A stretch of DNA of 64,000 bases from positions 186,001 to 250,000 of the forward strand of contig NIVC01000702.1 in NCBI GenBank assembly GCA_002269645.1, read 5' to 3'. The position numbers were made by a program, and so were the translations under genes. This document shows positions 2,014-64,000 of the stretch, in pieces. Positions within the stretch are counted from its first letter, which is position 1. Each line of letters begins with the position of its first letter. The notes below the pieces were generated by a model. That model did not search any database. It was not told the origin of the DNA and saw nothing but the letters and a program-made list of their open reading frames with translations. The stretch is from Macrostomum lignano. Taxonomy: Eukaryota.

Positions 2014-10215
<8,202 letters not shown>

Positions 10216-24290: not shown

Positions 24291-27200
24291 TTGACTTACT
24301 TGACTTAGCTGCAGGGCTGTCCCGGAGGGGACACAGCGGGAAGGCGCGGGCGCCCATTCCGCTAGTCCCTGAACGGCCGACGCGTCGCTATGGACGGAGG
24401 GTTGGCGCCGCCCAGGGAGGTCCCCCAGTGTTGCCAGCAGCTATGGTGCTCTCTGGAAAGGAGAGTTCAGCCCTGCGGGTGGCCCGAAGGTAGCGCATGA
24501 GCTGATTAAAGTTTTCGGGTTTGCACGCTTCAGTAATAGATGTGTGTGGCCCGAGGTAAGTGAGTCTGGCCTGCGTGAAGGCGGGACAGATGCTGACGAA
24601 ATGCTCAGCGGTTTCGTCACCTGAGTTGCAGAAACTACAGGTGGCGTTGGTGGCGTTGCCCTGCAGGTACTGGTGCCTGGAGAAGCAGCCGTGACCAGAG
24701 AGGGTCATGGTGGCAGCCCGGATGTCTCTGCGCGAGAGGCGCAAGAGGAGCTTCCAGAGCTGGTGAGAGGGCTGAGGGACAGCGCCTCTGGATTGCCTGC
24801 AGTTCGTGCGGTTCGCCCAAGTCGAGCGGTGCTGAGTCCTGATCCACGCTTTGATGCGCAAGTCGATGACACAGCCAGGAATCGGGACAAGAGGTTCGGG
24901 GCCGAGAGAGGAGCCGGAGGCACCAACTTTTGCAAGGGTGTCAGCCAACTCATTTCCTCGGATCCCCACATGCCCCAGAACCCACTTAAGGGTAATTTTG
25001 TTGGCGGAACCCAACATATTGAGGAGTTTGATACAGTCAAGGACTGTAGCAGAGTTGGTGCTGCAGCCACTGATGGCGTGCAAGGCAGCTTGGCTGTCCG
25101 AATGGAAAATGATGTTCTTACCAGTAACGCCAGTGGCGAGAAGCTCTGCAGTGCAGGAGCTGATGGCCAGAACTTCATTTTGGAAAACACTGGAGTTGAC
25201 CCCAGTGTATTGAGCGTGGGTAGCGATGACCCTCCCGTTCAGAAAGATTCCAACACCAAAGCCGGTGTTGGCTGACTGCTTAGAACCGTCGGTGTAGCAA
25301 TGAAGCTCACCAGGGTTCCAATGGTCATTGATGTTATCGCGCGAGTCGATAGCTACGGAGTAGCGCTGTCTCAGGTTGAGCGTTGAGGCAATGCCATCGG
25401 TGAAGACGCGATTGGCCTGACACTCGTTGAGAAAGTTGAGGCACAGATCGCTATGCGGGACAAGGTTCCGCTTAGCAGGTGCTCTCATGTAAATGAATTT
25501 GACGCCGGCATCAATTAGACGCCGCGTCGTTCTAGCCGCCTCACCCCTGATGAAGAGGTCAAGAGGCGGAAGATTAAGAAAGGCCCCCATGCCAGCAAAG
25601 GGCGTGGACCTGGTGGCGTTGCAGATGAGCCTACACGCTCTGCCTTGGATCGTGTTGAGCAGGTCTGCATGGCTTTTGACCTGGGTAGCGCTAACCCAGA
25701 CAACAGAGGTGTACGTAATGGCAGGTCTAACTATGGAAGTATAGATCCACCAAAGCCGCTTTGGGGATAGACCCCAAGAAGTGCCAAGTGCTCGTCGGAG
25801 CTGGGCCAGGATGGCTGAGGCACGCTTAGCTTTTGCTTTCACGTGGAAGGACCAGTTGAGCCGGTGGTCAAGTGTGACCCCGAGACATCTGGTCTAGTGC
25901 GCGAAGGCAATATCTCTGCCGTAGAGCTGCAGAGGACGTATGTTCCAGCGTAGTCTGCTGGTAAACATAATGGCAACGGTTTTGGGCTCAGAGAGTTCCA
26001 AACCATTGTCATTGGCCCAGGATTCTGCTTTGCGGATAAAGCTCTGCATCAGATCCCTGAGCGTGCTGGGAGACGGTCCTGCCACAATGGCCGTGACGTC
26101 ATCAGCATACCCGACTTTGAAGACGGGGTCAGGTCGGGAGTCACTCAGAAGAGCGTCCATGACCAGGTTCCAGAGCGTCAAGGTGAGGACTCCGCCTTGG
26201 GGTCCACCCTTACAGACTCTGGTGGAGGCAGTTTGCCCAAGAAGTTGGGCAGTGACCGTACGGTTGGAGATCATGTACATGATCCACCGTATGAGGGTAG
26301 CATGAGCTTTGCGATTTTGAAAGGCCCTCTGAAACGCTTCAAAGATAACATTGTCGAAGGCGCCAACAATGTCAAGAAAGAGAGCCAGGGCGTAACCGTC
26401 ACCCAGTACCGCCCGTTCAATCTTTTCGACAATCGCATGCAGGGCGCTGTCAGTCGACCTCCCGGTACGGAAGGCGTGCTGATTATTGCTGAGGGGCATC
26501 GCTGTCAGCTCGCAGGACAGCAGCCGCCAGAGAATAAGCCTCTCAGTGAGCTTAAGCATTGCTGACGTTAAGCTAATTGGCCAGAAGGCCTTGACGCTTT
26601 GGTAGTCACCCTTCCCAGGTTTGGGAATAAAGACTACTCGAGCTTCAGTCCAGCTTTTGGGAACGTATCCCAGCTGGATAGAGGCCCGCATAAGATTGCG
26701 AGTGAGTCTCAGGAACGAGGGTATCTTGGCTGCTTCACGAAGGAGAACAGGGTAGATACCATCAGGTCCAGGAGATTTGAAGGGTTTGAAGGTTCTGACT
26801 GCACGAGCGATTAGGTCTTCAGTGACAATGCCCGCCGCTAGGGTGGCTCCATCCATCGAATGGTTGGGCTCCGGTCTAGCAGTAGGTACCCTCGGGAAGA
26901 ATGTGCTAAGCATATGCTGAAGCACTTCTTCAGGGTCTTTAGTAAGAGAGCCATCATCTTTTTTGATCATGGCTAATTTGGACATTTTGTCCATTGTAAG
27001 GGCCTTGACAAGCCTAGAAGTAGGTCTGTCTTGATCCAATTCATTGCAGAATTGGCGCCACTTACATTCCTTGGCCTTGCGCACTTCAGATTTGAAATTG
27101 CGGGAGGCTTGCCGGAAAAGCTCCATGTCCTCCGGGTTTCCGGTCTTCATGGCACGGCGATGAAAGCTTTTGGCCTTCCGCCTGAGTTTCCCCAGCTCCG

Positions 27201-28432
27201 GGTTCCACCACGGCGCCGAGGTCTTGCCTCTGTAGGCGCGAGCAGGACAAGCCGCTTCGTAGGCTGCAATAATGCAACCTGTCAGCGTCTCAACCATATG
27301 ATCCACATCCTCGCAGGTCTCAATCGGACGTAAGTCCGTGAGTTCCTGCAGGTGCAGATCAAGGGCAGCCTTGTAGGCCGCCCAATCAGTGTTGCGGATA
27401 TTGCGTCTCCAAGTGATCGGAGACTGGGTTTTAGTGTCCGCGATATTAAAGGCGATAAAGCAGTGGTCAGACAGGGAGGGCTCCTCAGACCAGACTCTCT
27501 ACTCCTTGACTCTGTCAAAGAGTCTTGGGGTAACGAGTGTGGCGTCGAGGACCTCGGTCCATCTGCCATTATTAAAGGTAGGAGTGCTGCCGCAGTTGCA
27601 GAGCATGAGGTTTGTGTTAGAGATGAGGGCCAGAAGCTCCTCTCCTCTAGTGTTGGTATCTTTGCTGCCCCAGTGCTTGTGGTGCGCGTTGAGGTCGCCC
27701 CCTAAGCACAGCTCAGCGTTCTGGGACTCGCAGTACTGCGCAAGGCGCAGTAAACTCTCGGGAGCAGGGTCTCTATCGCCTGGGATATAAACCGAGGCAA
27801 CAAGACACGTACGCGGAGAGAAATGATTAGATTGGATGACGCAAAGGTCTCCATCAGAGAGATCAGTCCTCAGCCAAGCCTGGAGATGGCTAGCAGCGAG
27901 GATAGCCGCTCTAGGGCGGCTGTTCCCCGGGCCACACACATAAAAATCAGAGTAGCCAGAGGGAATGTTGGGCAACTTACCATTGCGCATCCAGGGTTCC
28001 TGGATCAGGATGAGGCCTGGCCTGTACAGCTCAGCAATCTTCATCAGATTTACTGATGCAGATACACAATGCTGTAAATTTATTTGCAGACAGAATGTCG
28101 CTCCTTTGGCAGCGTGGAGCTTAGTCATACTGTATTAAATGCAATATCTGGCTAGAGCCCAGGGCCATCAAGGAGACTTGGACAACAGATCGTCCTCGTC
28201 CCAGGCCGCTGGGGCTTGACTGGGAGATGGGAGTTGGTCGACGTCCATGGCCTCCTCACCCCCACCGGCCCCCCCAGCAGAGTCCTCAGGCTCCGATGAC
28301 AGGATGGAGGAAGCTTCCTCACCTGCATCTTTACCTTCAGACCCCACCAAGGTGGCCAAGGAGAGCTCGGATTCCAAAGACCCGGCCTCGTCCTCAACTC
28401 CTTCTCCGACTGGTAGGTTTGGTTCCCGGGGC
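24291..28432 (-). mobile_element. Non-LTR retrotransposon (LOA/R1-like, I group with RNase H), copy A; lacks the 5' UTR and most of ORF1 because of the duplication breakpoint
   Basis: APE, RT and RNase H motifs as in copy B; 3' tail (TAAGTCAAG)2 on the minus strand. Confidence 0.92.
24388..28128 (-). pseudogene. LINE ORF2 (APE endonuclease, RT, RNase H, C-terminal Cys/His knuckle), one frame interrupted by two TAG stops (~27499 and ~25894)
   Basis: QINLQH, LIQEP, GGDLNAHH, SDH (APE); PGPDG, PISL, PQGG, YADD (RT); YTDGSK, SDSQAAL, WVLGH.GIRGNELAD (RNase H); CSFC..ET.EH..C. Reading continues in frame past both TAGs. Confidence 0.92.
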
Positions 28433-33431: not shown

Positions 33432-36400
33432 CTATGGACGGAGGGTTGGCGCCGCCCAGGGAGGTCCCCCAGTGTTGCCAGCAGCTATGGTGCTCTCTGG
33501 AAAGGAGAGTTCAGCCCTGCGGGTGGCCCGAAGGTAGCGCATGAGCTGATTAAAGTTTTCGGGTTTGCACGCTTCAGTAATAGATGTGTGTGGCCCGAGG
33601 TAAGTGAGTCTGGCCTGCGTGAAGGCGGGACAGATGCTGACGAAATGCTCAGCGGTTTCGTCACCTGAGTTGCAGAAACTACAGGTGGCGTTGGTGGCGT
33701 TGCCCTGCAGGTACTGGTGCCTGGAGAAGCAGCCGTGACCAGAGAGGGTCATGGTGGCAGCCCGGATGTCTCTGCGCGAGAGGCGCAAGAGGAGCTTCCA
33801 GAGCTGGTGAGAGGGCTGAGGGACAGCGCCTCTGGATTGCCTGCAGTTCGTGCGGTTCGCCCAAGTCGAGCGGTGCTGAGTCCTGATCCACGCTTTGATG
33901 CGCAAGTCGATGACACAGCCAGGAATCGGGACAAGAGGTTCGGGGCCGAGAGAGGAGCCGGAGGCACCAACTTTTGCAAGGGTGTCAGCCAACTCATTTC
34001 CTCGGATCCCCACATGCCCCAGAACCCACTTAAGGGTAATTTTGTTGGCGGAACCCAACATATTGAGGAGTTTGATACAGTCAAGGACTGTAGCAGAGTT
34101 GGTGCTGCAGCCACTGATGGCGTGCAAGGCAGCTTGGCTGTCCGAATGGAAAATGATGTTCTTACCAGTAACGCCAGTGGCGAGAAGCTCTGCAGTGCAG
34201 GAGCTGATGGCCAGAACTTCATTTTGGAAAACACTGGAGTTGACCCCAGTGTATTGAGCGTGGGTAGCGATGACCCTCCCGTTCAGAAAGATTCCAACAC
34301 CAAAGCCGGTGTTGGCTGACTGCTTAGAACCGTCGGTGTAGCAATGAAGCTCACCAGGGTTCCAATGGTCATTGATGTTATCGCGCGAGTCGATAGCTAC
34401 GGAGTAGCGCTGTCTCAGGTTGAGCGTTGAGGCAATGCCATCGGTGAAGACGCGATTGGCCTGACACTCGTTGAGAAAGTTGAGGCACAGATCGCTATGC
34501 GGGACAAGGTTCCGCTTAGCAGGTGCTCTCATGTAAATGAATTTGACGCCGGCATCAATTAGACGCCGCGTCGTTCTAGCCGCCTCACCCCTGATGAAGA
34601 GGTCAAGAGGCGGAAGATTAAGAAAGGCCCCCATGCCAGCAAAGGGCGTGGACCTGGTGGCGTTGCAGATGAGCCTACACGCTCTGCCTTGGATCGTGTT
34701 GAGCAGGTCTGCATGGCTTTTGACCTGGGTAGCGCTAACCCAGACAACAGAGGTGTACGTAATGGCAGGTCTAACTATGGAAGTATAGATCCACCAAAGC
34801 CGCTTTGGGGATAGACCCCAAGAAGTGCCAAGTGCTCGTCGGAGCTGGGCCAGGATGGCTGAGGCACGCTTAGCTTTTGCTTTCACGTGGAAGGACCAGT
34901 TGAGCCGGTGGTCAAGTGTGACCCCGAGACATCTGGTCTAGTGCGCGAAGGCAATATCTCTGCCGTAGAGCTGCAGAGGACGTATGTTCCAGCGTAGTCT
35001 GCTGGTAAACATAATGGCAACGGTTTTGGGCTCAGAGAGTTCCAAACCATTGTCATTGGCCCAGGATTCTGCTTTGCGGATAAAGCTCTGCATCAGATCC
35101 CTGAGCGTGCTGGGAGACGGTCCTGCCACAATGGCCGTGACGTCATCAGCATACCCGACTTTGAAGACGGGGTCAGGTCGGAGTCACTCAGAAGAGCGTC
35201 CATGACCAGGTTCCAGAGCGTCAAGGTGAGGACTCCGCCTTGGGGTCCACCCTTACAGACTCTGGTGGAGGCAGTTTGCCCAAGAAGTTGGGCAGTGACC
35301 GTACGGTTGGAGATCATGTACATGATCCACCGTATGAGGGTAGCATGAGCTTTGCGATTTTGAAAGGCCCTCTGAAACGCTTCAAAGATAACATTGTCGA
35401 AGGCGCCAACAATGTCAAGAAAGAGAGCCAGGGCGTAACCGTCACCCAGTACCGCCCGTTCAATCTTTTCGACAATCGCATGCAGGGCGCTGTCAGTCGA
35501 CCTCCCGGTACGGAAGGCGTGCTGATTATTGCTGAGGGGCATCGCTGTCAGCTCGCAGGACAGCAGCCGCCAGAGAATAAGCCTCTCAGTGAGCTTAAGC
35601 ATTGCTGACGTTAAGCTAATTGGCCAGAAGGCCTTGACGCTTTGGTAGTCACCCTTCCCAGGTTTGGGAATAAAGACTACTCGAGCTTCAGTCCAGCTTT
35701 TGGGAACGTATCCCAGCTGGATAGAGGCCCGCATAAGATTGCGAGTGAGTCTCAGGAACGAGGGTATCTTGGCTGCTTCACGAAGGAGAACAGGGTAGAT
35801 ACCATCAGGTCCAGGAGATTTGAAGGGTTTGAAGGTTCTGACTGCACGAGCGATTAGGTCTTCAGTGACAATGCCCGCCGCTAGGGTGGCTCCATCCATC
35901 GAATGGTTGGGCTCCGGTCTAGCAGTAGGTACCCTCGGGAAGAATGTGCTAAGCATATGCTGAAGCACTTCTTCAGGGTCTTTAGTAAGAGAGCCATCAT
36001 CTTTTTTGATCATGGCTAATTTGGACATTTTGTCCATTGTAAGGGCCTTGACAAGCCTAGAAGTAGGTCTGTCTTGATCCAATTCATTGCAGAATTGGCG
36101 CCACTTACATTCCTTGGCCTTGCGCACTTCAGATTTGAAATTGCGGGAGGCTTGCCGGAAAAGCTCCATGTCCTCCGGGTTTCCGGTCTTCATGGCACGG
36201 CGATGAAGCTTTTGGCCTTCCGCCTGAGTTTCCCCAGCTCCGGGTTCCACCACGGCGCCGAGGTCTTGCCTCTGTAGGCGCGAGCAGGACAAGCCGCTTC
36301 GTAGGCTGCAATAATGCAACCTGTCAGCGTCTCAACCATATGATCCACATCCTCGCAGGTCTCAATCGGACGTAAGTCCGTGAGTTCCTGCAGGTGCAGA

Positions 36401-37170
36401 TCAAGGGCAGCCTTGTAGGCCGCCCAATCAGTGTTGCGGATATTGCGTCTCCAAGTGATCGGAGACTGGGTTTTAGTGTCCGCGATATTAAAGGCGATAA
36501 AGCAGTGGTCAGACAGGGAGGGCTCCTCAGACCAGACTCTCTACTCCTTGACTCTGTCAAAGAGTCTTGGGGTAACGAGTGTGGCGTCGAGGACCTCGGT
36601 CCATCTGCCATTATTAAAGGTAGGAGTGCTGCCGCAGTTGCAGAGCATGAGGTTTGTGTTAGAGATGAGGGCCAGAAGCTCCTCTCCTCTAGTGTTGGTA
36701 TCTTTGCTGCCCCAGTGCTTGTGGTGCGCGTTGAGGTCGCCCCCTAAGCACAGCTCAGCGTTCTGGGACTCGCAGTACTGCGCAAGGCGCAGTAAACTCT
36801 CGGGAGCAGGGTCTCTATCGCCTGGGATATAAACCGAGGCAACAAGACACGTACGCGGAGAGAAATGATTAGATTGGATGACGCAAAGGTCTCCATCAGA
36901 GAGATCAGTCCTCAGCCAAGCCTGGAGATGGCTAGCAGCGAGGATAGCCGCTCTAGGGCGGCTGTTCCCCGGGCCACACACATAAAAATCAGAGTAGCCA
37001 GAGGGAATGTTGGGCAACTTACCATTGCGCATCCAGGGTTCCTGGATCAGGATGAGGCCTGGCCTGTACAGCTCAGCAATCTTCATCAGATTTACTGATG
37101 CAGATACACAATGCTGTAAATTTATTTGCAGACAGAATGTCGCTCCTTTGGCAGCGTGGAGCTTAGTCAT
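33432..37170 (-). pseudogene. LINE ORF2 copy B (APE-RT-RNase H) with the same two TAG stops plus single-base homopolymer frameshifts
   Basis: Identical to copy A except 1-bp indels near ~35180, ~36205 and ~36235. Confidence 0.9.
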
Positions 37171-45369: not shown

Positions 45370-48300
45370 ATGTCCGCTGACAACCAGCAGCGGCGCCCGC
45401 TGCCCAGGCATCACGCCAAGCAGGGACCCTGCCTTAACCGGCCTCCTTATAGGGATGGCAGGCGTAAGACTGCCGTTAAGGTGAGGATGGGACAATTATA
45501 CCTATATTTGAGCTTAAAGAGACTCTGATTGGTCAGGAGATTCTCTGATTGGTCAGGAGATTCTCCGATAGGTCATGCGATTCTCTGATTGGTCAGGAGA
45601 TTCTCTGATTGGTCAGGAGATTCGCTCATTGGTCAGGAGATTCGCTGATTGGTCAGGTGATTCTCTGATTAGTCAGGCGATTCTCTGATTGGTCAGGCGA
45701 TTCTCTGATTAGTCAGGCGATTCTCTGATTGGTCAGGCGATTCTCTGATTAGTCAGGCGATTCTCTGATTGGTCAGGCGATTCTCTGATTGTTCAGGCGA
45801 TTCTCCGATGGTCAGGCGATTCTCTGATTAGTCAGGCGATTCTCTGATTGGTCAGGCGATTCTCCGATAGGTCAGGCGATTCTCTGATTGGTCAGGCGAT
45901 TCTCCGATAGTCAGGCGATTCGCTGATTGGTCAGGCGATTCTCTGATTGGTCAGTATATTCTCTGATTGGTCAGGCGATTCTCTGATTAGTCAGGCGATT
46001 CTCTGATTGGTCAGGCGATTCTCTGATTAGTCAGGCGATTCTCTGATTGGTCAGGCGATTCTCCGATAGGTCAGGCGATTCTCTGATTGGTCAGGCGATT
46101 CTCCGATAGTCAGGCGATTCGCTGATTGGTCAGGCGATTCTCTGATTGGTCAGTATATTCTCTGATTGGTCAGGAGATTCTTTGATTGGCCGGAAGTGAA
46201 AGTGGGTAAAGAAAGTGGGGGTTTAAAGGTTGGCAATAGGGAATTTGAATTTTGGGAATGAGGATTTAAAAATCCCCCTAACCCCCTACAAGGCCTACTG
46301 CATCTCAGACGAGTCTCAGTACCTGCAAATCTACGGTGTGCCGGCCATCGGTCTGACAGATCACGTGACCCGCTCGGCCAGTCGCTTTGGCCCAGTGGAA
46401 TCGGTGACCCGTTTGGACTGTTCCGCGTCTGTTGCAACATCTGCACCATCAACTAGTCAAAATAGCCAACTTGTTGAAGCCTTCACCGATACATTTCTGA
46501 TTAAATTTGTCAGGATTAATAGTGCAAGGTTAGTGGCTCTTTATTTTATTGTTTATTAATTAAATTTTATTTAATATCATCAATATAAGCTGCATGTACT
46601 CCAGACTCTACCGGAAGCCTACACGAGTACCTAGAAATTAATGGTACCCTTTTTAAAAATGTTGTTTGCAGATTATCAAAGGGCGTAGATTAACAAATAT
46701 CTAACCCATTTTCTCCACTGTTTCTTGTGTTTCATTTTTGAATAGAGGGCTAGTTATCAAATAAACTTCTGGGGCAGTTTCTAAACATTCCTTATTAAAG
46801 TATCGATGTCTCTGATCAATCTATAGATGTCTCTAGTCAGTCTGTAGATATTCCTGATCGATCTATAGATATCTCTGATCAGTCTGTAGATATTCCTGAT
46901 CAATCTATAGATGTCTCTGATCAATATGTAGATATTCCTGATCAATCTATAGATATCTCTGATCAGTCTATAGATATCTCTGATCAATCTATAGATATCT
47001 CTGATCAATATGTAGATATTCCTGATCAATCTATAGATGTCTCTGATCAATATGTAGATATCCCTGATCAATCTATAGATATCTCTGATCAGTCTATAGA
47101 TATCTCTGATCAATCTATAGATATCTCTGATCAATATGTAGATATTCCTGATCAATCTATAGATATCTCTGATCAATATGTAGATATTCCTGATCAATCT
47201 ATAGATGTCTCTGATCAGTCTGTAGATATTCCTGATCAATCTATAGATATCTCTGATCAGTCTATAGATATCTCTGATCAATCTATAGATATCTCTGATC
47301 AATATGTAGATATTCCTGATCAATCTATAGATGTCTCTAGTCAGTCTGTAGATATTCCTGATCAATCTATAGATATCTCTGATCAGTCTATAGATATTCC
47401 TGATCAATCTATAGATATCTCTGATCAATATGTAGATATTCCTGATCAATCTATAGATATCTCTGATCAATATGTAGATATTCCTGATCAATCTATAGAT
47501 GTCTCTGATCAGTCTATAGATATCTCTGATCAATCTATAGATATCTCTGATCAGTCTATAGATATCTCTGATCAATCTATAGATATCTCTGATCAATATG
47601 TAGATATTCCTGATCAATCTATAGATATCTCTGATCAATATGTAGATATTCCTGATCAATCTATAGATGTCTCTGATCAGTCTATAGATATCTCTGATCA
47701 ATCTATAGATATCTCTGATCAATATGTAGATATTCCTGATCAATCTATAGATATCTCTGATCAGTCTATAGATATCTCTGATCAATCTATAGATATCTCT
47801 GATCAATATGTAGATATTCCTGATCAATCTATAGATGTCTCTGATCAGTCTATAGATATCTCTGATCAATCTATAGATATCTCTGATCAGTCTATAGATA
47901 TCTCTGATCAATCTATAGATATCTCTGATCAATATGTAGATATTCCTGATCAATCTATAGATATCTCTGATCAATATGTAGATATTCCTGATCAATCTAT
48001 AGATGTCTCTGATCAGTCTGTAGATATCTCTGATCAATATATAAATATTCCTGATCAATCTATAGATGTCTCTGATCAGTCTGTAGATATCTCTGATCAA
48101 TATATAAATATTCCTGATCAATCTATAGATGTCTCTGATCAGTCTGTAGATATCTCTGATCAATATATAAATATTCCTGATCAATCTATAGATGTCTCTG
48201 ATCAGTCTGTAGATATCTCTGATCAATATATAAATATTCCTGATCAATCTATAGATGTCTCTGATCAGTCTGTAGATATTCCTGATCAATCTATAGATGT

Positions 48301-48805
48301 CTCTGATCAGTCTGTAGATATTCATGGTCGATCTTTAGATATCCTCATCAGTATGTCGATATTCCTGATGGATTTATATCTATCCATGGCCAATCTCTAA
48401 ATAGCCAGCCATGGCCAATCTTTAGATATCTATGGTTAATCTCTAGATATCTATAGCCAATCTTTAAATATCTATAATTCATTTCTGGATATATCTGTTC
48501 AATCTCTAGATATTCCTGATCAATCCTCATCCATATCTCTAGCCACTCCAAGAATCAGTGGGATCAGTACTCAGCTCGCTGATCCATTTTGTATCCTTGC
48601 TTTTGAGAAAGACACAATTGAAAGCTGTCAATTATTTTCCTTGAACTGACCGCCCAAACTAATCGATGAACAACCGGAAATCAGACACGCCAAGAGGCGC
48701 ATGGACGATTTGAACTTTTTCGGCGGTGTATTACATGCCGTGTACGCTCCCGAGTTCGAATCCGCGGAGGAGTGCCGACTTAAATTGAAGCACCGCTGTC
48801 GGCAG
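45370..48805 (+). CDS. RBM48: RNA-binding protein 48 (minor-spliceosome-associated RRM protein), exons 45370-45480, 46293-46528, 48685-48805; 3' end uncertain (possibly 48963-49022 or splicing on to 49868-50416)
   Basis: HHAKQGPCLNRPPYRDGRRKTAVK|AYCISDESQYLQIYGVPAIG..FTDTFLIKFVRINSAR|HAKRRMDDLNFFGGVLHAVYAPEFES matches my recollection of RBM48 (YREGRRPRAVKVYTINLESQYLLIQGVPA..AKRKMDEQSFFGGLLHVCYAPEFE); phases 0 and 2 consistent. Confidence 0.9.
45520..46185. repeat. 20-bp minisatellite (gattctctgattggtcaggc) in RBM48 intron 1
   Basis: Direct. Confidence 0.95.
46810..48330. repeat. 21-bp palindrome-rich minisatellite (atctctgatcaatctatagat) in RBM48 intron 2
   Basis: Direct; gives the spurious IRDIYRL heptad ORF. 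Confidence 0.96.
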
Positions 48806-55534: not shown

Positions 55535-56037
55535 TGGGAAAATCAGATTGGGGATCTGGGAGAATCAGATTGAGGATCTGGGAAGATCAGATTGGGGATC
55601 CGAGGGAATTAGATTAGGGAGCTGGGGAATCAGATTGGGGATCTGGGAGAATTAGATTGGGGATCTGAGAGAATCAGATTGGGGATCTGGGAGAATCAGA
55701 TTGGGGATCTGGGAGAATCAGATTGGGGATCTGAGGGAATCAGATTGGGGAGCTGGGGAATTGGATTGGGGATCTGAGGGAATCAGATTGGGGATCTGGG
55801 AGAATTAGATTGGGGATCTGGGAGAATCAGATTGGGGATCTGAGGGAATCAGATTGGGTATCACGGAGAATCAGATTGGGGATCCGAGGGAATCAGATTG
55901 GGGATCTGAGAGAATCAGATTGGGGATCTGGGAGAATCAGATTGGGGATCTGGGAGAATCAGATTGGGGATCTGGGAGAATCAGATTGGGGATCTGGGAG
56001 AATCAGATTGGGGAACTAGGTGAGTCAGATTGGGGAT
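55535..56037. repeat. 22-bp minisatellite (tggggatctgggagaatcagat) starting a few bases 3' of the nAChR stop codon
   Basis: Direct. Confidence 0.93.
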
Positions 56038-56045
56038 CAATTTAT

Positions 56046-59000
56046 TTATCCCTTAAACACATCCGGAGCAGAGAACAGAATCGCGCATGTCGAGATGATG
56101 GTGAAGCAGGAGAACAGGATGAGGCAGAGTCTGTCCACCACTCTGGCCGCGAATTTCCACTCGCTGCTGACTTCTCCGTCCGCCACATCATCGGAGATTT
56201 TCTGCGTGACGATTCGAAGTTCGTGAACGATGGCGGCGAGCTCGGAACGCACGCTGCAGGGCGGCTGCTGCTGCTGAACCTCATCGTACACCGGTGGCGC
56301 CCTCGACGCAGCGGCCTGGGCAGCGGATGCTCGAAAATTGTCCTCCAGGTCCAGCACGTTCGCCAGCAGCGACTTTGAAGAGCGTTCGCGCAGCTCCATC
56401 GAGGCTGGCCCTGGGGAGGCGTGGCAGCATGAGATTATCCTCGACTCTCATGGTGAGATTATCCTCGACTCTCATGGTGAGATTATCCTCGACTCTCATG
56501 GTGAGATTATCCTCGATTCTTATAGTGAGATTATCATTGATTTTTATGGTGATATTATCTTTGGTTCTTTTGATGATATTCTGCTCGATTCTTATGGTGA
56601 GATTATCCCAGATCCTTATTATGAGATTATCCTCGATTTTTTAATGAGATTATCCTTGATTCGTGTAGTGAGATTATCCTCGATTCTTATGGTGAGATTA
56701 TCTCTGATTCTTCTGGTGAGATTTTCCCTGATTCTTGTGAGATTATCTTTGATTCTTATGGTAAGATTATCAATGATCTCTATGATGAGACTATCCTTAA
56801 TCATACATTATCCCAGACTCTTATGGTATGATAATTCGCTTTTCTTATGGTGAGATTATCCCTAATTCCTATGGTGAGATTATCCTTTGTTTAGATGAGA
56901 TTATTCATTATTCTTATGGTGAGAATGTGTCGACTCGTATGGTGAGAATATCTCTGATTATCATGAGATTATTCCGCCTCTCCGATCCGATCTCCGCCCT
57001 CACCTCCCTGCTGCTGGTGGTGATCCGCCAGCAGCTCCCTGTGGTGCTCTGTGCCGAAGCCGGAGCCGGCGGATGCGCTGGCCCGGAAAGTGCCCAGTTT
57101 GCCTCCGCCGGTGGCGCCGCGAGTTCGGCGACGCCTCATCCGGATCGGCTCCGAGTCCGTGTCCCGGCGCATGCGGCGCATGCAAAGAATGCTGGCCAGG
57201 TAGGTGCAGATGAACTGGCGCACCTGGTTGCCATGGCGACGGGAGTTTTGGAGTTGTTAGTTTGTGTCGAAATCTTCTGTAGGCTATCGCTAAATCTATT
57301 GGAATGAGATTATCTGAATTCATATCATGAGATTATCGCTGAATCCATCCCAGGAGATTATGTCTAAATCCATCTCATGAGATTATTGCTGAATCCATCT
57401 CATGAGATTATCGCTAAATTCATATCATGAGATTATCGCTGAATCCATCTCATGAGATTATCTCTAAAACATTAGATAATCTATAGTATTTAAGAAGTCA
57501 AAATTCGCTTTAAACTCTTACCCAATTAGGAATTGGATGCGATTCGGCATCTCTGTGATGGTAGTTGAGCACAATCACGGTGAACACCACTGATAGACTG
57601 CACATGATCATGGTGCAGGCAAAGTACATGCCTGAAAGTTTACCAGAAAAAATTTCTATAACTTCTGAAAAAAATACTTAAAAAATTGATTGGAAAACAA
57701 AAATTGATTAGAAAAATCATTGTTATCATAAATTACAATTAGACACAGAAATAGAAAGCGAAATCCTATAGTTTAACAATTAAGTGCTTTGCAGGACTTC
57801 TTTACTTAAGGTAACTCGTTTTAGGTAAATTTTTGTCTGGAGTAAATTTCTTGAGAAATCAATGCTAAAATAGATTTATCATTTTTCATAATTTCAATCA
57901 AAACTACATTGTAGCATTGTTAATGGATTTCATCTTTACCAAATTTAAGGCTTCTTAGCTGCTAAAGTGCAGCCTTGTATGTAGGATACAGCAAATTCAA
58001 TTTTATCAAACGGATTTTTCAAAATTAAAGAAACTTACCTGTTTAACAAAATCGATACTGCTTTTATTAGGAAAAGAAAAATTTCATTTTCTTAATTGCG
58101 TTTTTATACTGTTATTAGATTACTTTTTTATTATGTATAGGGCACCGAAAAGCGTGGATATCGTAAATTTTACCCGCCTACTACTTAGTAGTAAGTATAG
58201 TATCTCGCAGCTCACCTATCACAGGCACAGAGTCTGACGTGGGCGGCATTGCCTCAGCAACCATCATTAGAAATACCGTTAGCGATAGAAGAATTGTGAC
58301 ACCTAAATAAAATTATCAAATAATATTATAGCTACTGTATCAATACTGTTAGTAAGAATAATATAATTACAGTCTTATTGATTAATTTATTTTTACTTTT
58401 TTCTGAAGCAAGTCTCTTGGAAAGTTTGGATGGGCATTTTAAATTTGTCGATTGGAAATTATTGTTTAGTTTTAGTTTGAGAATCTGACAGACTGACGGA
58501 CGCAAACTAAAATTTCAGACCAAAATGAGAAATTGTGTAAACAAAAATAAAGTTTTAGTATAATCTATCTATACAGACCGTAGTGAATTCACACAAAAAT
58601 TATTAAGAATCATGCCAAAAAACCGACGTACACAAAACGAAACAAATTTTCAATAGCATATTACCTGAATTATGCTACTAAAAGTAGGAAAAAAGCGCCC
58701 TCACCAATAAGCGGCAGCGCTTCCGAAGTTTGCGGCATTGCGTCAGCCACAAGCAGCAAAAACATGGTCAGGGAGAGCAGGATGGTGACGCCTGCGCCAA
58801 GTAAAATTCATAAATCATATTTTACCGATCAGTTGCTTGTTAATAATGAGGTGTTAGAACCAAGTCTAACAGCTGTAACAGAATTCATCTAATGTTCGAA
58901 TTCTGTCTAACAGCTGTACCAGAATTCATCTAATGTTCGAATTCTGTCTAACAGACTATCAATTTATCTAACATGTTCCTTCACTGTCTAACAGACTAAC

Positions 59001-62000
59001 ATAATTTATCTAACATGTCCCTTCACTGTCTAACAGACTAACATAATTTATCTAACATGTCCCTTCACTGTCTAACAGACTAACATAATTTATCTAACAT
59101 GTCCCTTCACTGTCTAACAGACTAACATAATTTATCTAACATGTTCCTTTACTGTCTAACAGACTAACATAATTTATCTAACATGTTCCTTCACTGTCTA
59201 ACAGACTAACATAATTTATCTAACATGTTCCTTTACTGTATAACAGACTAACATAATTTATCTAACATGTTCCTTTACTGTCTAACAAACTAACATAATT
59301 TATCTAACATGTCCTTCACTGTCTAACAGACTAATTTATCTAACATGTTTCTTCAATGTCTAACAGACTAACATAATTTATCTAACACGTTCCTTCACTG
59401 TCTAACAGACTAACATAATTTATCTAACATGTCCCTTCACTGTCTAACAGACTAACATAATTTATCTAACATGTTCCTTCACTGTCTAACAGACTAACAT
59501 AATTTATCTAACATGTTCCTTCACTGTCTAACAACTAACATAATTTATCTAACATGTTCCTTCACTGTCTAACAGACTAATTTATCTAACATGTTTCTTC
59601 AATGTCTAACAGACTAACATAATTTATCTAACACGTTCCTTCACTGTCTAACAGACTAATTTATCTAACATGTCCCTTCACTGTCTAACAGACTAACATA
59701 ATTTATCTAACATGTTCCTTCACTGTCTAACAGACTAACATAATTTATCTAACATGTTCCTTCACTGTCTAACAGACTAACATAATTTATCTAACATGTT
59801 CCTTCACTGTCTAACAGACTAATTTATCTAACATGTTCCTTCACTGTCTAACAGACTAATTTATCTAACATGTTTCTTCAATGTCTAACAGACTAAAATA
59901 ATTTATCGAACATGTTCCTTCCCTGTCTAAAAGACTTACATAATTTATCTAATATGTTCCATATCTGTCTAACAAAATGGATTTGTTACATAACAGGTCA
60001 GACTCGTGTGTCTAACAGATAAATTTTTCCTAAATCAATTTAGGATTATTAATTATTTAATTAGAGATTATTGCAGTGCTACTCTTATTCAGTAGGCTGG
60101 GCGCGTATGTGTGCATTTAAATGTTTTTTATCGTAAATTTATTGTGAAATTCCATAGATTGCGCAATATCAGTGTGTAGCAATATTTTGCGTGTTCATGT
60201 ATGAAAATGTTGCGCCAATCGGTTTGCGAGTTTAATACAGATGGCTGCTGCTCTTTTGCAAATGGAAATTTTCTAATAGCTCTGCGAGGTGCTTAGCATA
60301 AGAAATCGAAGAAGCACTTAAAACTCGAATTTTTTTATAGAGTGGCCCTGACCTGAAAAATGTGATTTTTCAAGAATTCATTGCGCATTATTGGATCTTC
60401 TTTCTGAAATAGGTATGCAATTCCTTTCGACTTTCCCTGCATTTCCTTTTCATCTCCCTGCATTTCCCTTTGATCTCCCTGCATTTCCCTTTGATCTCCC
60501 TGCATTTCCCTTTGATCTCCCTGCATTCCCCTTCACTCTCCCTGCATTTCCCTTCACTCTCCCTGCATTTCCCTTCACTCTCCCTTCATTTCCCTTTGAT
60601 CTCCCTGCATTTCCCTTTGATCTCCCTGCATTTCCCTTCACTCTCCCTGCATTTCCCTTCACTCTCCCTGCATTTCGCTTTGATCTCCCTGTATGTCCCT
60701 TTACTCTCCCTGCATTCTCTACATACAACTTCAAAAAAATAAACTTTAACTATGTCTAAATCATTCCGAAAGTTATAAATTTAAACCAATAAACAAAAAA
60801 TTTAAACAAAAAACTCACCCAACGATATCTTCTCTCCTGCATCCGGTGGCAGCATGAAGGTGAGTAGCGCCATGGAGGAGATTAACACGCAGGGGATTAT
60901 GAGATTAAACCCATAGTACAAAGTCCGTCGGCGGATGTTGATCCAGTACTTCAGATCGATGAACGGGAACGGGCAGCAGTCGTAAAGAAGAGCCGTTCTA
61001 ACGCCAGGCATGCCTGACAAAACAGGTTAACATTTTCCGGCTTTGATTTTTGCGCGTTATTTACGAGCGCACATTTTCAATTAAAAATATGTAGTGAGTG
61101 CTCTTAAAGGTTTTAAGCGTGTTTGCCGGTTTATTAAGTACAAAATGAACTTTGCAATGCTTTTTACGCTAGGCGCTTAAAGTTGCATTTTGTGCGAGAA
61201 TTGGTCGTCAATTTTAAGCAACGGTTAAACGATAACCTGAGATTCAGGAGACCTGAGATTCAGGAGACCTGAGATTCAGGAGACCTGAGATTCAGGAGAC
61301 CTGAGATTCAGGAGACCTGAGATTCAGGAGACCTGAGATTCAGGAGACCTGAGATTCAGGAGACCTGAGATTCAGGAGACCTGAGATTCAGGAGACCTGA
61401 GATTCAGGAGACCTGAGATTCAGGAGACCTGAGATTCAGGAGACCTGAGATTCAGGAGACCTGAGATTCAGGAGACCTGAGATTTAGGAGACCTGAGATT
61501 CAGGAGACCTGAGATTCAGGAGATCTGAGATTCAGGAGACCTGAGATTCAGGAGACCTGAGATTCAGGAGACCTGAGATTCAGGAGACCTGAGATTCAGG
61601 AGACCTGAGATTCAGGAGACCCAAGATTTTCCCATATTTTTCAGCCATCCGTCCTTTCCAAGAATCGCTAACCTATCAATCAATGCCACGTGACCTCAAA
61701 ACGAAATTTTTGTTTTACCGAAGCTGACTTTTTCCCCAGCATCCGGCGGTATGATGAAGCTGAGCAGGGCTAGCGAGGACAGAAACGAACAGGGGCCAAT
61801 TAAATTGAATACGTAATAAAGCTTGCGCCTGCGGATTAGCAGGTAGAATTTCAGATCGATATATGGATGGGGGCAGCAGTCGTATAGGATGCTGGTCCGC
61901 ACTCCCGGTAAACCTGCGTGCAAGTTGGACGAGTCAAAAATTTTTCTGGCTGGGCGAACATTAAAAAATGCCTGGATTTTTCGGCAATAAAACTGATTCT

Positions 62001-63125
62001 GAGATTTCAACACTTTGAGATTAAACCAATTACCGATTATTCACTGCCGAATATGCAGTTCAATTAAATGATTATAACCATATTAAAGTCTGATAAAAGA
62101 TCGTTGAACTAAGAAAATATTGTAAATGTGACATTTCATTCAACCAATGAATAGTCAGTCGGTCAATCAATCAATTAATCAATCAATCAAATCAATCAAT
62201 CAATCAGATCTATCAATCAATCAGATCAATCAATCAATCAGATCAATCAATCAATCAAATCAATCAATCAATCAGATCAATCAATCAATCAGATCAATCA
62301 ATCAATCAGATCAATCAATCAATCAGATCAATCAATCAATCAGATCAATCAATCAATCAGATCAATCAATCAATCAGATCAATCAATCAATCAGATCTAT
62401 CAATCAATCAGATCAATCAATCAAATAAATCAATCAATCAGATCTATCAATCAATCAGATCAATCAATCAATCAGATCAATCAATCAATCAAATCAATCA
62501 ATCAATCAGATCAATCAATCAATCAGATCAATCAATCAATCAGATCTATCAATCAATCAGATCAATCAATCAAATCAATCAATCAATCAGATCAATCAAT
62601 CAATCAGATCAATCAATCAAACAGATCAATCAATCAATCAGATCTATCAATCAATTAATGAATTAAATAACAAATCAATAAATTATCAAAGCGTACAATC
62701 AAACTACAAATTAATCAAGGGAAATAGCATTCGCTGTCAATAGATTATTACAATCTTTCACAATCTCTATTGTGAATCTCTATTACAATCTTATCAAGTT
62801 TTGCATACCTTCCAGGTTCCACTCGCCACTCTCAACATAAGTCGATATGTCGCCAGACCCTTTCTCCGAACAGTTTTTCGGGTCCTTCAGGATTTTCTCG
62901 GTCGTGTCCAGGTTGGGGTCGTCGCACTTGAACCGCAAATCCACGGTGCCCCCATCATAAGTCCAGGAGCCGAACTTCAACTCGCATTTCTGAGTATCGA
63001 ACGGAAACCAGGTGATGTCAATTTTGCAGGTGGACTTGAACATGCCAGGCGGGATGTAGTTCATGCTGCCGTAGTGATTTATGACCACATTCGTCGGAAA
63101 TGTGCCGTCGAACTTCTCGTCCGCG
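56046..63125 (-). CDS. CHRNA7-like: Nicotinic acetylcholine receptor alpha subunit (alpha7-like), 5' exons outside the window. Exons 63125-62809, [61913-61719 or 61013-60819], 58791-58705, 57631-57522, 57223-57004, 56410-56046
   Basis: SADEKFD..TNVV, Cys-loop [26 protein letters not shown], vicinal YDCC, PPDAGEK, TM2 [17 protein letters not shown]3 [39 protein letters not shown]4 [14 protein letters not shown]; all phases consistent. Confidence 0.95.
56428..57470. repeat. Degenerate 24-25-bp minisatellites (gagattatcctcgactctcatggt at 56428-56975; catgagattatcgctgaatccatct at 57305-57470) in two consecutive nAChR introns
   Basis: Direct. Confidence 0.88.
58860..59970. repeat. 42-bp minisatellite (ctaacagactaacataatttatctaacatgttccttcactgt) in a nAChR intron
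   Basis: Period 42 at 59041/59083. Confidence 0.94.
60430..60720. repeat. 21-bp minisatellite (cctgcatttccctttgatctc)
   Basis: Direct. Confidence 0.93.
60819..61013 (-). CDS. nAChR loop C/TM1 exon, copy B ([33 protein letters not shown])
   Basis: tgtcag|GC ... TTG G|gtgagt, 195 nt, phase 1-1. Confidence 0.93.
61236..61622. repeat. 16-bp hairpin minisatellite (cctgagattcaggaga) between the two duplicated nAChR exons
   Basis: Period 16, nearly homogeneous. Confidence 0.96.
61719..61913 (-). CDS. nAChR loop C/TM1 exon, copy A ([33 protein letters not shown])
   Basis: cacgcag|GT ... TTC G|gtaaaa, 195 nt, phase 1-1. Confidence 0.85.
62150..62655. repeat. (TCAA)n / atcaatcaatcag microsatellite in a nAChR intron
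   Basis: Direct. Confidence 0.95.
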
Positions 63126-63284: not shown

Positions 63285-64000
63285 ATTCTAATTGATTTCT
63301 AGGAATGAGATTCTCATTGATTTCTAAAAAGAAGATTCTAATTGATTTCTAGGAAAAATATTCGTATTGATTTCTAGGAAAAATATTCGTATTGATTTCT
63401 AGGAAAAATATTCGTATTGATTTCTAGGAAAAATATTCGTATTGATTTCTAGGAAAAATATTCGTATTGATTTCTAGGAAAAATATTCGTATTGATTTCT
63501 AGGAAAAATATTCTAGCTCGTAATTGATTTCCAGGAATGACATTTTCTTTGATTTCTAGGAATGAGATTCTAATTGATTTCTAGGAAAAAGATCCTAATT
63601 GATTTCTAGGAAAATAATTCTAATTGATTTCTAGGAAAATAATTCTAATTGATTTCTAGGAAAAATATTCTCATTGATTTCTAAGAATGATTGGATTCTC
63701 ATTGATGGCTAGGAAGATTCTATTTCATTTCTTGAAAAAATTCTTTTTGATTTCTAGGAAAAAGATTCTAATTGATTTCTAGGAAAAAGATCCTAATTTA
63801 TTTCTAGGAAAATAATTCTAATTGATTTCTAGGAATGAGATTCTCATTGATTTCTAGGAATGAGATTCTCATTGATTTCTAGGAATGAGATTCTCATTGA
63901 TTTCTAGGAATGAGATTCTCATTGATTTCTAGGAAAAAGATCCTAATTTATTTCTAGGAAAATAATTCTAATTGATTTCTAGGAATGAGATTCTCATTGA
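63285..64000. repeat. ~23-25-bp minisatellite (attgatttctaggaaaaatattcgt and variants) in a nAChR intron; continues past the window edge
   Basis: Direct. Confidence 0.93.

Follow-up and report, generated by a model that had tools for sequence, protein, structure and literature searches.

Two duplicated exon pairs in an alpha7-like receptor gene

We analyzed a 64,000-nt stretch of the Macrostomum lignano genome (assembly GCA_002269645.1, contig NIVC01000702.1, positions 186,001 to 250,000), referred to here as the window, whose minus strand carries the 3' two-thirds of an alpha7-like nicotinic acetylcholine receptor (nAChR) gene, from 63125 down to 56046. Within this gene lie two tandem exon pairs, 7a/7b and 8a/8b, each with a divergent upstream copy (a) and a canonical downstream copy (b), and these pairs are the subject of this study. 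The exon map was obtained from tblastn with human alpha7, with splice sites read directly. Exons upstream of the Cys-loop exon, encoding loops D and A and the signal peptide, fall beyond the window end at position 64000. M1 to M4 denote the transmembrane segments, with M2 also written TM2. In order of transcription, the exons are as follows.

62809..63125, minus strand: Cys-loop exon, 317 nt, phase 2 in and phase 1 out, tblastn match to human alpha7 at E 2.9e-26; encodes loop E, the Cys-loop (C-x13-C), loop B, and loop F
61719..61913, minus strand: exon 7a, divergent copy, 195 nt, phase 1-1
60819..61013, minus strand: exon 7b, canonical copy, 195 nt, phase 1-1
58705..58791, minus strand: exon 8a, divergent TM2 version (TMF...VAD.MPQTSE), 87 nt, phase 1-1
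58216..58302, minus strand: exon 8b, canonical TM2 version (TVF...VAE.MPPTSD), 87 nt, phase 1-1
57522..57631, minus strand: M3 exon, 110 nt
57004..57223, minus strand: intracellular loop exon, 220 nt, with a boundary that keeps the frame open into the M4 exon
56046..56410, minus strand: last exon (end of the intracellular loop, M4, and stop codon), 365 nt, tblastn E 1.5e-13

Exons 7a and 7b both encode loop C, pre-M1, M1, the M1-M2 loop, and M2 positions -1' to 3', while 8a and 8b encode M2 4'-20' and the M2-M3 loop. One exon 7 joined to one exon 8 gives an uninterrupted 430-aa frame to the stop codon whichever copies are chosen, and all four combinations (7a8a, 7a8b, 7b8a, and 7b8b) stay in frame.

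The identity of the gene was clear from several features. The exon at 63125-62809 holds a Cys-loop with 13 residues between its two cysteines, as in nAChRs; the vicinal cysteine pair of loop C (YDCC), a hallmark of alpha subunits, is present in 7a and 7b alike; M1 (exon 7), M2 (exon 8), M3, and M4 align with human alpha7; and the cation-type GEK ring before M2 is found as PPDAGEK in both exon 7 copies. Among structures in the PDB, the protein was closest to human alpha7 (E ~1e-84), while alpha3, alpha4, and muscle subunits scored 1e-57 or weaker; its named database matches were alpha-7, acr-16, and alpha6. The best database matches were M. lignano proteins, and the exon 7 peptides of UniRef models A0A1I8H5A2 and A0A1I8H9W9 from this species are identical to those of the window, including CCPHPY. 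Relative to human alpha7, loop F has an insertion of 24-26 aa with two cysteines (window 62850-62930, minus strand), which is kept in outline (KC...NDP.NC) across M. lignano paralogues.

A first-pass annotation of the window, made from its letters alone, had described exons 7a and 7b as two 195-nt phase 1-1 copies, and their positions and boundaries hold: AG precedes and GT follows both 61913-61719 and 61013-60819, and each copy is open in one frame only. Their identity is 43/64 aa over whole codons, equal to the earlier count of 45/66 once two split Gly codons are included, and every quoted motif was found (loop C YDCCPHPY versus YDCCPFPF, RRRKLYY versus RRRTLYY, LIGPC versus LIIPC, and PPDAGEK in both). 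The copies share 121/195 nt, with differences at the three codon positions of 17/12/44, and the peptide of one finds the other exon in tblastn at E = 1.9e-29, so their likeness is not due to chance. The same annotation had assumed a single TM2 exon. Instead, there are two 87-nt TM2 exons with AG/GT boundaries in phase 1-1, at 58791-58705 and 58302-58216, identical at 19/28 aa and 58/87 nt, and up to four exon 7/exon 8 combinations are therefore possible. Both pairs consist of adjacent homologues of the same length and phase with intact splice sites, as expected of tandem duplication.

To place the pairs within the species, we compared two paralogue contigs of the same assembly, L001 and L002 (NIVC01004712.1). 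L001 has the same 7a-7b-8a-8b layout, with lengths and phases identical to the window gene (7a 4090-4284, 7b 4939-5133, 8a 5801-5887, and 8b 6416-6502). Nei-Gojobori estimates of nonsynonymous (dN) and synonymous (dS) divergence between the window gene and L001 gave dN/dS of 0.15 for 7a (dN 0.18, dS 1.2), 0.08 for 7b, 0.05 for 8a, and 0.06 for 8b, with dS between the paralogues at about 1 or more. Purifying selection thus holds each of 7a, 7b, 8a, and 8b (dN/dS 0.05-0.15), and a value of 0.15 over a dS of ~1.2 means that 7a is no decaying relic. Synonymous sites between 7a and 7b are saturated (proportion of synonymous differences, pS, 0.82), which, together with the low dN/dS between paralogues, bears out the earlier suggestion of an old duplication with both copies under selection.

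Paralogues and public gene models of M. lignano

L002 (12653-14826) contains only one 7b-type and one 8a-type exon, and its short introns leave no room for further copies, so 7a and 8b are absent. Of the three genes, L001 and L002 are the closest pair, so L002 has lost both exons. In a neighbor-joining tree of the 64-aa exon 7 blocks, the M. lignano 7a exons formed one clade (94%) and the 7b exons another (97%). The two clades broadly match in topology, with the window gene and the paralogue model P0002 paired in both (68-86% support), though the partner of L001 differs between them (L002 for 7b and P0007 for 7a, the latter at 41%). Judged from these sequences, the 7a/7b duplication took place before at least four M. 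lignano paralogues diverged.

Public gene models of these loci fall into two kinds. P0001 to P0004, among them UniRef A0A1I8HTP0, A0A1I8H5A2, and A0A1I8GWB3, hold both loop C/M1 exons in series, and some hold both TM2 exons: P0001, the public model of the window gene, joins 7a and 7b, and the paralogue models P0002 and P0003 join 7a, 7b, 8a, and 8b. In the topology of Cys-loop receptors, a second M1 would invert M2 to M4, and because everything after it would be inverted, we read these serial models as probable artifacts of ab initio annotation. Models with both loop C/M1 copies in series also exist for Capitella (P0019), Owenia (P0021), and the barnacle Amphibalanus (XP_043210121-25); those of Capitella and Owenia, and possibly the Amphibalanus RefSeq isoforms, are probably wrong as well. 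Models of the second kind hold one copy of each exon. The RNA-seq-derived GenBank models P0005 (L001 gene) and P0006 (L002) contain 7b+8a, and mRNAs of this composition therefore exist for both genes, while the models of a further paralogue, P0007 and P0185, contain only 7a+8b. GenBank proteins of GCA_002269645.1 derive from an RNA-seq-guided transcriptome from which isoforms below 0.75 of the major one were discarded (PMC5730564), so the lack of 7a isoforms there means little. A protein search with the 146-aa 7a+8b junction peptide returned short proteins of ≤64% identity, none from M. lignano, in a database apparently without M. lignano transcript fragments.

The exon 7 pair in other phyla

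The pair was then sought in relatives, as the first-pass annotation had proposed, and was found in Lineus (Nemertea), Capitella and Owenia (Annelida), and Lingula (Brachiopoda), each with the divergent copy upstream of the canonical one, both in phase 1-1 and of 195 nt (198 nt in Lingula). Lineus longissimus provides the clearest case. Five RefSeq isoforms of one alpha7-like gene differ exactly in the 64-aa exon 7 block, with one copy each: XP_064652926/36/52 are b-type and XP_064652944/68 a-type. In the Lineus genome, both versions are encoded by 195-nt phase 1-1 exons, the a-type first and the b-type second, with a single TM2 exon after them; the a-type exon carries the class residues of 7a, and the other version is close to 7b. 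This gene (L003) also has alternative blocks in the loop D and loop A region (protein positions 77-118), giving at least three clusters of alternative exons. The Lineus isoforms are known as automated annotation, and our literature search found no paper describing them.

In the other species, the arrangement varies in its spacing. Owenia and Capitella also have a single canonical TM2 exon after the loop C/M1 pair. Only 72 nt separate the copies in Owenia (L004 51004-51075), short enough for steric exclusion; the spacer in the ENA contig behind P0136 is in frame and comparably short, and the intron between the Capitella copies is 150 nt. In Lingula anatina (L005, LFEI02000065.1), we found an unannotated upstream copy at 8686-8883 (198 nt, AG/GT), ~500 nt before the annotated exon at 9381-9578, and the two copies have in common a one-residue insertion in loop C. 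Among arthropods, the isoforms of chelicerates vary at loop D and TM2 and those of barnacles at TM2, positions already known from alpha6; in Amphibalanus, the loop C/M1 exon has been duplicated separately (66% bootstrap for the two copies).

We considered two histories for these pairs. Over the M1 (C-terminal) half of the exon, the nearest foreign relative of every M. lignano 7a is Lineus 7a, and reciprocally; the closest match of Capitella 7a is an ENA a-type exon, with M. lignano 7a next. The a-type exons of M. lignano, Lineus, and Capitella, with two from ENA, are thus each other's nearest neighbors over this half, and they form a cross-phylum clade at 64% bootstrap on 64 aa. This clade, the shared Lys after RRR and Phe at M2 3', and the upstream position of the divergent copy in 6/6 loci examined make a single ancient origin of the a-type exon the better reading of the sequences, with Owenia and Lingula ambiguous, and the 7a/7b pair probably arose before flatworms, nemerteans, and annelids diverged. 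Alternatively, the pairs could have arisen by recurrent tandem duplication in each lineage, with the a-type residues convergent. The a-copies of Owenia and Lingula are nearest to b-types, mean a-versus-a identity between taxa (0.54-0.59) is not above a-versus-b identity, loop C halves are alike between partner exons within a species, and the insertion common to both Lingula copies and the separate duplication in Amphibalanus also fit this history. Against it stand the reciprocal M1-half neighbors, the a-type clade, the shared Lys and Phe, and the constant exon order, and we consider recurrent duplication possible but less likely than a single origin.

Residues that separate the two exon classes

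We compared ten a-type exons with sixteen b-type or single-copy exons by alignment column. Three columns split all ten from all sixteen.

Residue after RRR: K/R/Q/S in a-type, T/V in b-type
Gly of LYYG at the start of M1: V/L/I/M in a-type, G/A/F in b-type
M2 3', the last residue of exon 7: F/C/M/H in a-type, invariant L in b-type

In 7a the marks are K/R/Q in place of T after RRR, a hydrophobic residue in place of the Gly, and Phe in place of Leu at M2 3'. Identity of the M1 half across phyla is 86% for b-type and 59% for a-type exons, and the M1 half of 7b is ~86% identical to b-type exons elsewhere, while the loop C half of M. lignano 7a is nearest to M. lignano 7b. A swap of the ligand-binding loop, as first proposed, does not hold as the shared mark of these pairs: no loop C column separates the classes across taxa. 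The Tyr/Phe difference noted in loop C is present in the window gene, but it is gene-specific and varies within both classes among M. lignano paralogues; other M. lignano 7a exons have Phe at this position, and both Lineus exons have Tyr. With all discriminating columns in pre-M1, M1, and the base of M2, the conserved isoform difference, as read from the alignment, sits there and not in the agonist contacts of loop C, which evolves in step within each species.

The exon 8 copies vary at 13' (M/V), 16'-17' (LL/MM), and 20' (D/E). L001 8b matches Lineus TM2 in 25/28 residues, which makes 8b the canonical version and 8a the divergent one.

The pre-M1 arginines couple the binding domain to the channel, M1 lines a transmembrane modulator cavity, and M2 -1' to 3' forms the cytoplasmic mouth of the pore. 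By analogy, the isoforms would be expected to differ mainly in gating, desensitization, conductance, or modulator sensitivity, and we infer that the conserved difference affects agonist contacts less than it does coupling, gating, desensitization, and the transmembrane allosteric region. The His/Phe and Tyr/Phe differences in loop C may have a secondary effect on agonist binding in the window gene.

A candidate intronic bridge between 7a and 8b

The lengths of all four alternative exons are divisible by 3. An mRNA that lacked both copies of a pair, or contained both, would keep the frame and escape nonsense-mediated decay, so the choice must fall at splicing. The intron between 7a and 7b, at 705 nt in the window and 654 in L001, is too long for steric exclusion. 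An inverted-repeat scan of the window gene returned one pair that is not AT-rich, 61664-61645 with 58433-58414.

61645..61664, minus strand: candidate bridge 5' arm, 55-74 nt downstream of the 7a donor, UUCUUGGAAAGGACGGAUGG
58414..58433, minus strand: candidate bridge 3' arm, 112-131 nt upstream of the 8b acceptor, CCAUCCAAACUUUCCAAGAG

The predicted window duplex consists of 10-bp and 6-7-bp helices flanking a 3-nt mismatch. Its score was reached by 5/1000 dinucleotide shuffles of the splice-site-proximal segments (150 x 150 nt), segments that were chosen after the repeat was seen. In L001, equivalent arms lie at 4311-4356 and 6302-6347, and the pairing of the intron after 7a with the intron before 8b is the best of 10 intron pairs (49.5, next 36). 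It ranks first of 45 proximal segment pairs, is reached by 0/1000 shuffles, and has a duplex free energy (dG) of -58.9 kcal/mol. Complementary intronic elements thus lie beside the splice sites of alternative exons, score above chance for the proximal segments, and are kept in a paralogue. RNAduplex on 150-nt flanks gave long, loop-filled, uninformative structures, save for exposing the L001 helix, and a blastn search for conserved intronic sequence between the window and L001 recovered exons only, the introns being otherwise unalignable.

These data suggest an intronic bridge that couples 7a to 8b. If the introns downstream of 7a and upstream of 8b paired, the donor of 7a and the acceptor of 8b would be drawn together, with 7b and 8a in the loop between them; 7b would by default join 8a. 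Such coupling agrees with the absence of both 7a and 8b from L002, where they were lost together, and with the models that contain either 7a+8b or 7b+8a.

Other intronic candidates were set aside. A second pairing, between segments downstream of the Cys-loop exon and downstream of 8a, ranked high in both loci and was rejected because it is mismatch-rich and its offsets differ (1 versus 96 nt, 49 versus 10 nt). The AT-rich inverted repeats I1 and I4 by the 7a donor are low-complexity sequence. The intron between 7a and 7b also contains ~24 copies of a 16-nt self-complementary unit (window 61235-61621), and its predicted RNA fold is -242 kcal/mol (z = -12.6); as this minisatellite is absent from the same L001 intron, it is probably no part of the mechanism.

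Exon choice and alternative explanations

Taken together, we propose that the gene carries tandem pairs 7a/7b and 8a/8b, of which each mRNA includes one of each, that the a-type exon is old, and that an intronic bridge may couple the two choices; we assign this reading a probability of roughly 0.7. A mutually exclusive choice at each pair would yield subunits with alternative channel-domain modules. Mutually exclusive use of 7a/7b is well supported by the comparison with relatives, and it is the most likely arrangement in the window gene by sequence. A more specific picture, in which an ancient spiralian a-type exon is linked to a younger TM2 pair by a bridge particular to Macrostomum and the two channel halves are exchanged as a unit, is tentative, and we hold it at rather less than even odds.

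Several observations count against this proposal. For the window gene, mutual exclusivity is deduced from comparison with other loci, and the ab initio models P0001, P0002, and P0003, which we read as probable artifacts, join both copies in series. Support for the a-type clade is modest, falling from 64% to 40% once Owenia is included, and some pairs, given the placement of the Owenia and Lingula a-copies near b-types, may be independent duplications. The bridge has difficulties of its own: across whole introns of the window gene, 88/1000 shuffles reach its score, it ranks third among proximal segment pairs there, and the paralogue arms differ in sequence beyond a common GGAUG/CAUCC core. Furthermore, strict coupling would never yield the fully canonical 7b+8b, which is odd, and the bridge gives no account of how 8b is skipped after 8a.

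These last points bear on a rival in which both pairs are mutually exclusive but chosen independently, so that all four combinations are made and the intronic complementarity has no function. The open frame of every combination, the marginal score of the window bridge, and other weak pairings that score alike in the window would all fit, as would the a-type exons of Lineus, Owenia, and Capitella, which work with a single canonical TM2 and show that 7a needs no special partner. Yet the pairing downstream of 7a and upstream of 8b in L001 is a clear outlier, L002 lost 7a and 8b together, and single-copy models show 7b+8a or 7a+8b only. We rate independent choice as possible but less likely, and prefer a coupled, mutually exclusive choice.

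A third explanation, that 7a is a decaying or unused pseudo-exon and 7b alone is spliced in, draws on the pyrimidine tract of the window 7a acceptor, which is poor (ccaacttgcacgcag) compared with that of 7b (aacctgttttgtcag), and on the RNA-seq-based GenBank model of L001, which uses 7b only. Given the isoform cut-off of that pipeline, the absence of 7a from the model is uninformative, and the open frame and intact AG/GT in two paralogues, the constraint on 7a between them, and the use of a-type exons in the Lineus RefSeq isoform models and in P0007 and P0185 make a pseudo-exon very improbable. Least credible of all is that both copies are included together as two loop C/M1 modules, or that the assembly collapsed two genes: P0001, P0002, P0003, P0019, P0021, and the Amphibalanus RefSeq isoforms do join copies in frame, and Bombyx alpha6 transcripts with both exon 3a and exon 3b have been reported, but a second M1 would invert M2-M4, the Lineus isoform models and P0005, P0006, and P0007 hold one copy, and collapse is ruled out because the tandem layout recurs in an independent assembly contig as well as in Lineus, Owenia, Capitella, and Lingula.

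Other features of the window

Minisatellite arrays with units of 8-75 nt occupy almost every intron and the 3' flank of the nAChR gene, in line with a published figure of 15% simple and tandem repeats in the M. lignano genome. The arrays and the remaining features of the window are listed below.

55535-56038, 56430-56952, 57285-57468, 58864-59974, 60434-60716, 62163-62666, and 63285-64000: minisatellite arrays
24388-28128 and 33432-37170, minus strand: two copies of a retrotransposon without long terminal repeats (non-LTR), 9044 nt apart, with open reading frames (ORFs) matching an AP-type (apurinic/apyrimidinic) endonuclease, reverse transcriptase, and RNase H
5419-8763: very GC-rich region (up to 69% GC) with a 1114-aa ORF and, in other frames, several long ORFs that overlap, all without a Pfam match
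46649-48325: 21-nt tandem array of ~70 or more copies, giving a 514-aa repetitive ORF on the minus strand

Significance and comparison with known systems

Alternative exons are the main route of diversity in alpha7-like receptors of invertebrates, and those of insects, which alter loop D and TM2, are relevant to spinosad resistance. The exon 7 pair described here is real, old, and probably functional, and it extends this familiar theme: a swap of pre-M1, M1, and the pore base adds a different axis, namely the coupling of binding to gating, desensitization, and a transmembrane modulator site. The pair is apparently widespread in Spiralia, which includes parasitic flatworms with nicotinic receptors as drug targets. 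The coupling by a bridge is the most novel and the least secure part of our proposal. If true, the bridge would be a simple, testable example of how two neighboring exon choices are coordinated, in a species for which transgenesis exists.

The mutually exclusive nAChR exons known to the first-pass annotation did not cover loop C and TM1, and our literature search agrees, as it found exons 3 and 8 of Dalpha6 only. In Dalpha6, exons 3a/3b (loop D) and 8a/8b/8c (TM2 and the TM2-TM3 loop) are mutually exclusive; the published lists for Drosophila subunits and the insect alpha6 comparison include no alternative exon for loop C/M1, and searches for loop C/TM1 alternative exons and for nAChR splicing in flatworms and lophotrochozoans found nothing.

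The closest solved relative of the flatworm protein is human alpha7 (e.g., PDB 7KOO), with which the Cys-loop, the vicinal cysteines of loop C, the RRR of pre-M1, the GEK ring, and M1-M3 align; of the two proteins, the flatworm one alone has the loop F insertion. The vertebrate alpha7 gene has single exons for the loop C/M1/M2 region. Insect alpha6 resembles the M. lignano gene in being alpha7-like with tandem, same-length, in-frame exons, one cluster of which encodes M2 and the M2-M3 loop, but it has no alternative loop C/M1 exon; the additional M. lignano cluster encodes loop C, pre-M1, M1, and the base of M2. Although exon content and length class are the same, M. lignano 8a has no variant-specific residues in common with the TM2 variants of chelicerates or barnacles. 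Because 8a is unlike these arthropod variants, and because Lineus, Owenia, and Capitella have one TM2 exon, the TM2 duplication of M. lignano probably arose independently of insect exon 8. The Lineus alpha7-like gene matches M. lignano in having two 195-nt phase 1-1 exons, in the order a-b, at the same place in the protein, but differs in its single TM2 exon. Finally, the candidate bridge resembles the docking site/selector type of Dscam in that complementary intronic elements lie near regulated sites, here with their position kept between paralogues. In Dscam, one docking site is paired with several competing selectors that pick an exon within a cluster, whereas the M. lignano candidate is a single pair of arms that spans two exon clusters and would link the choices made at both.

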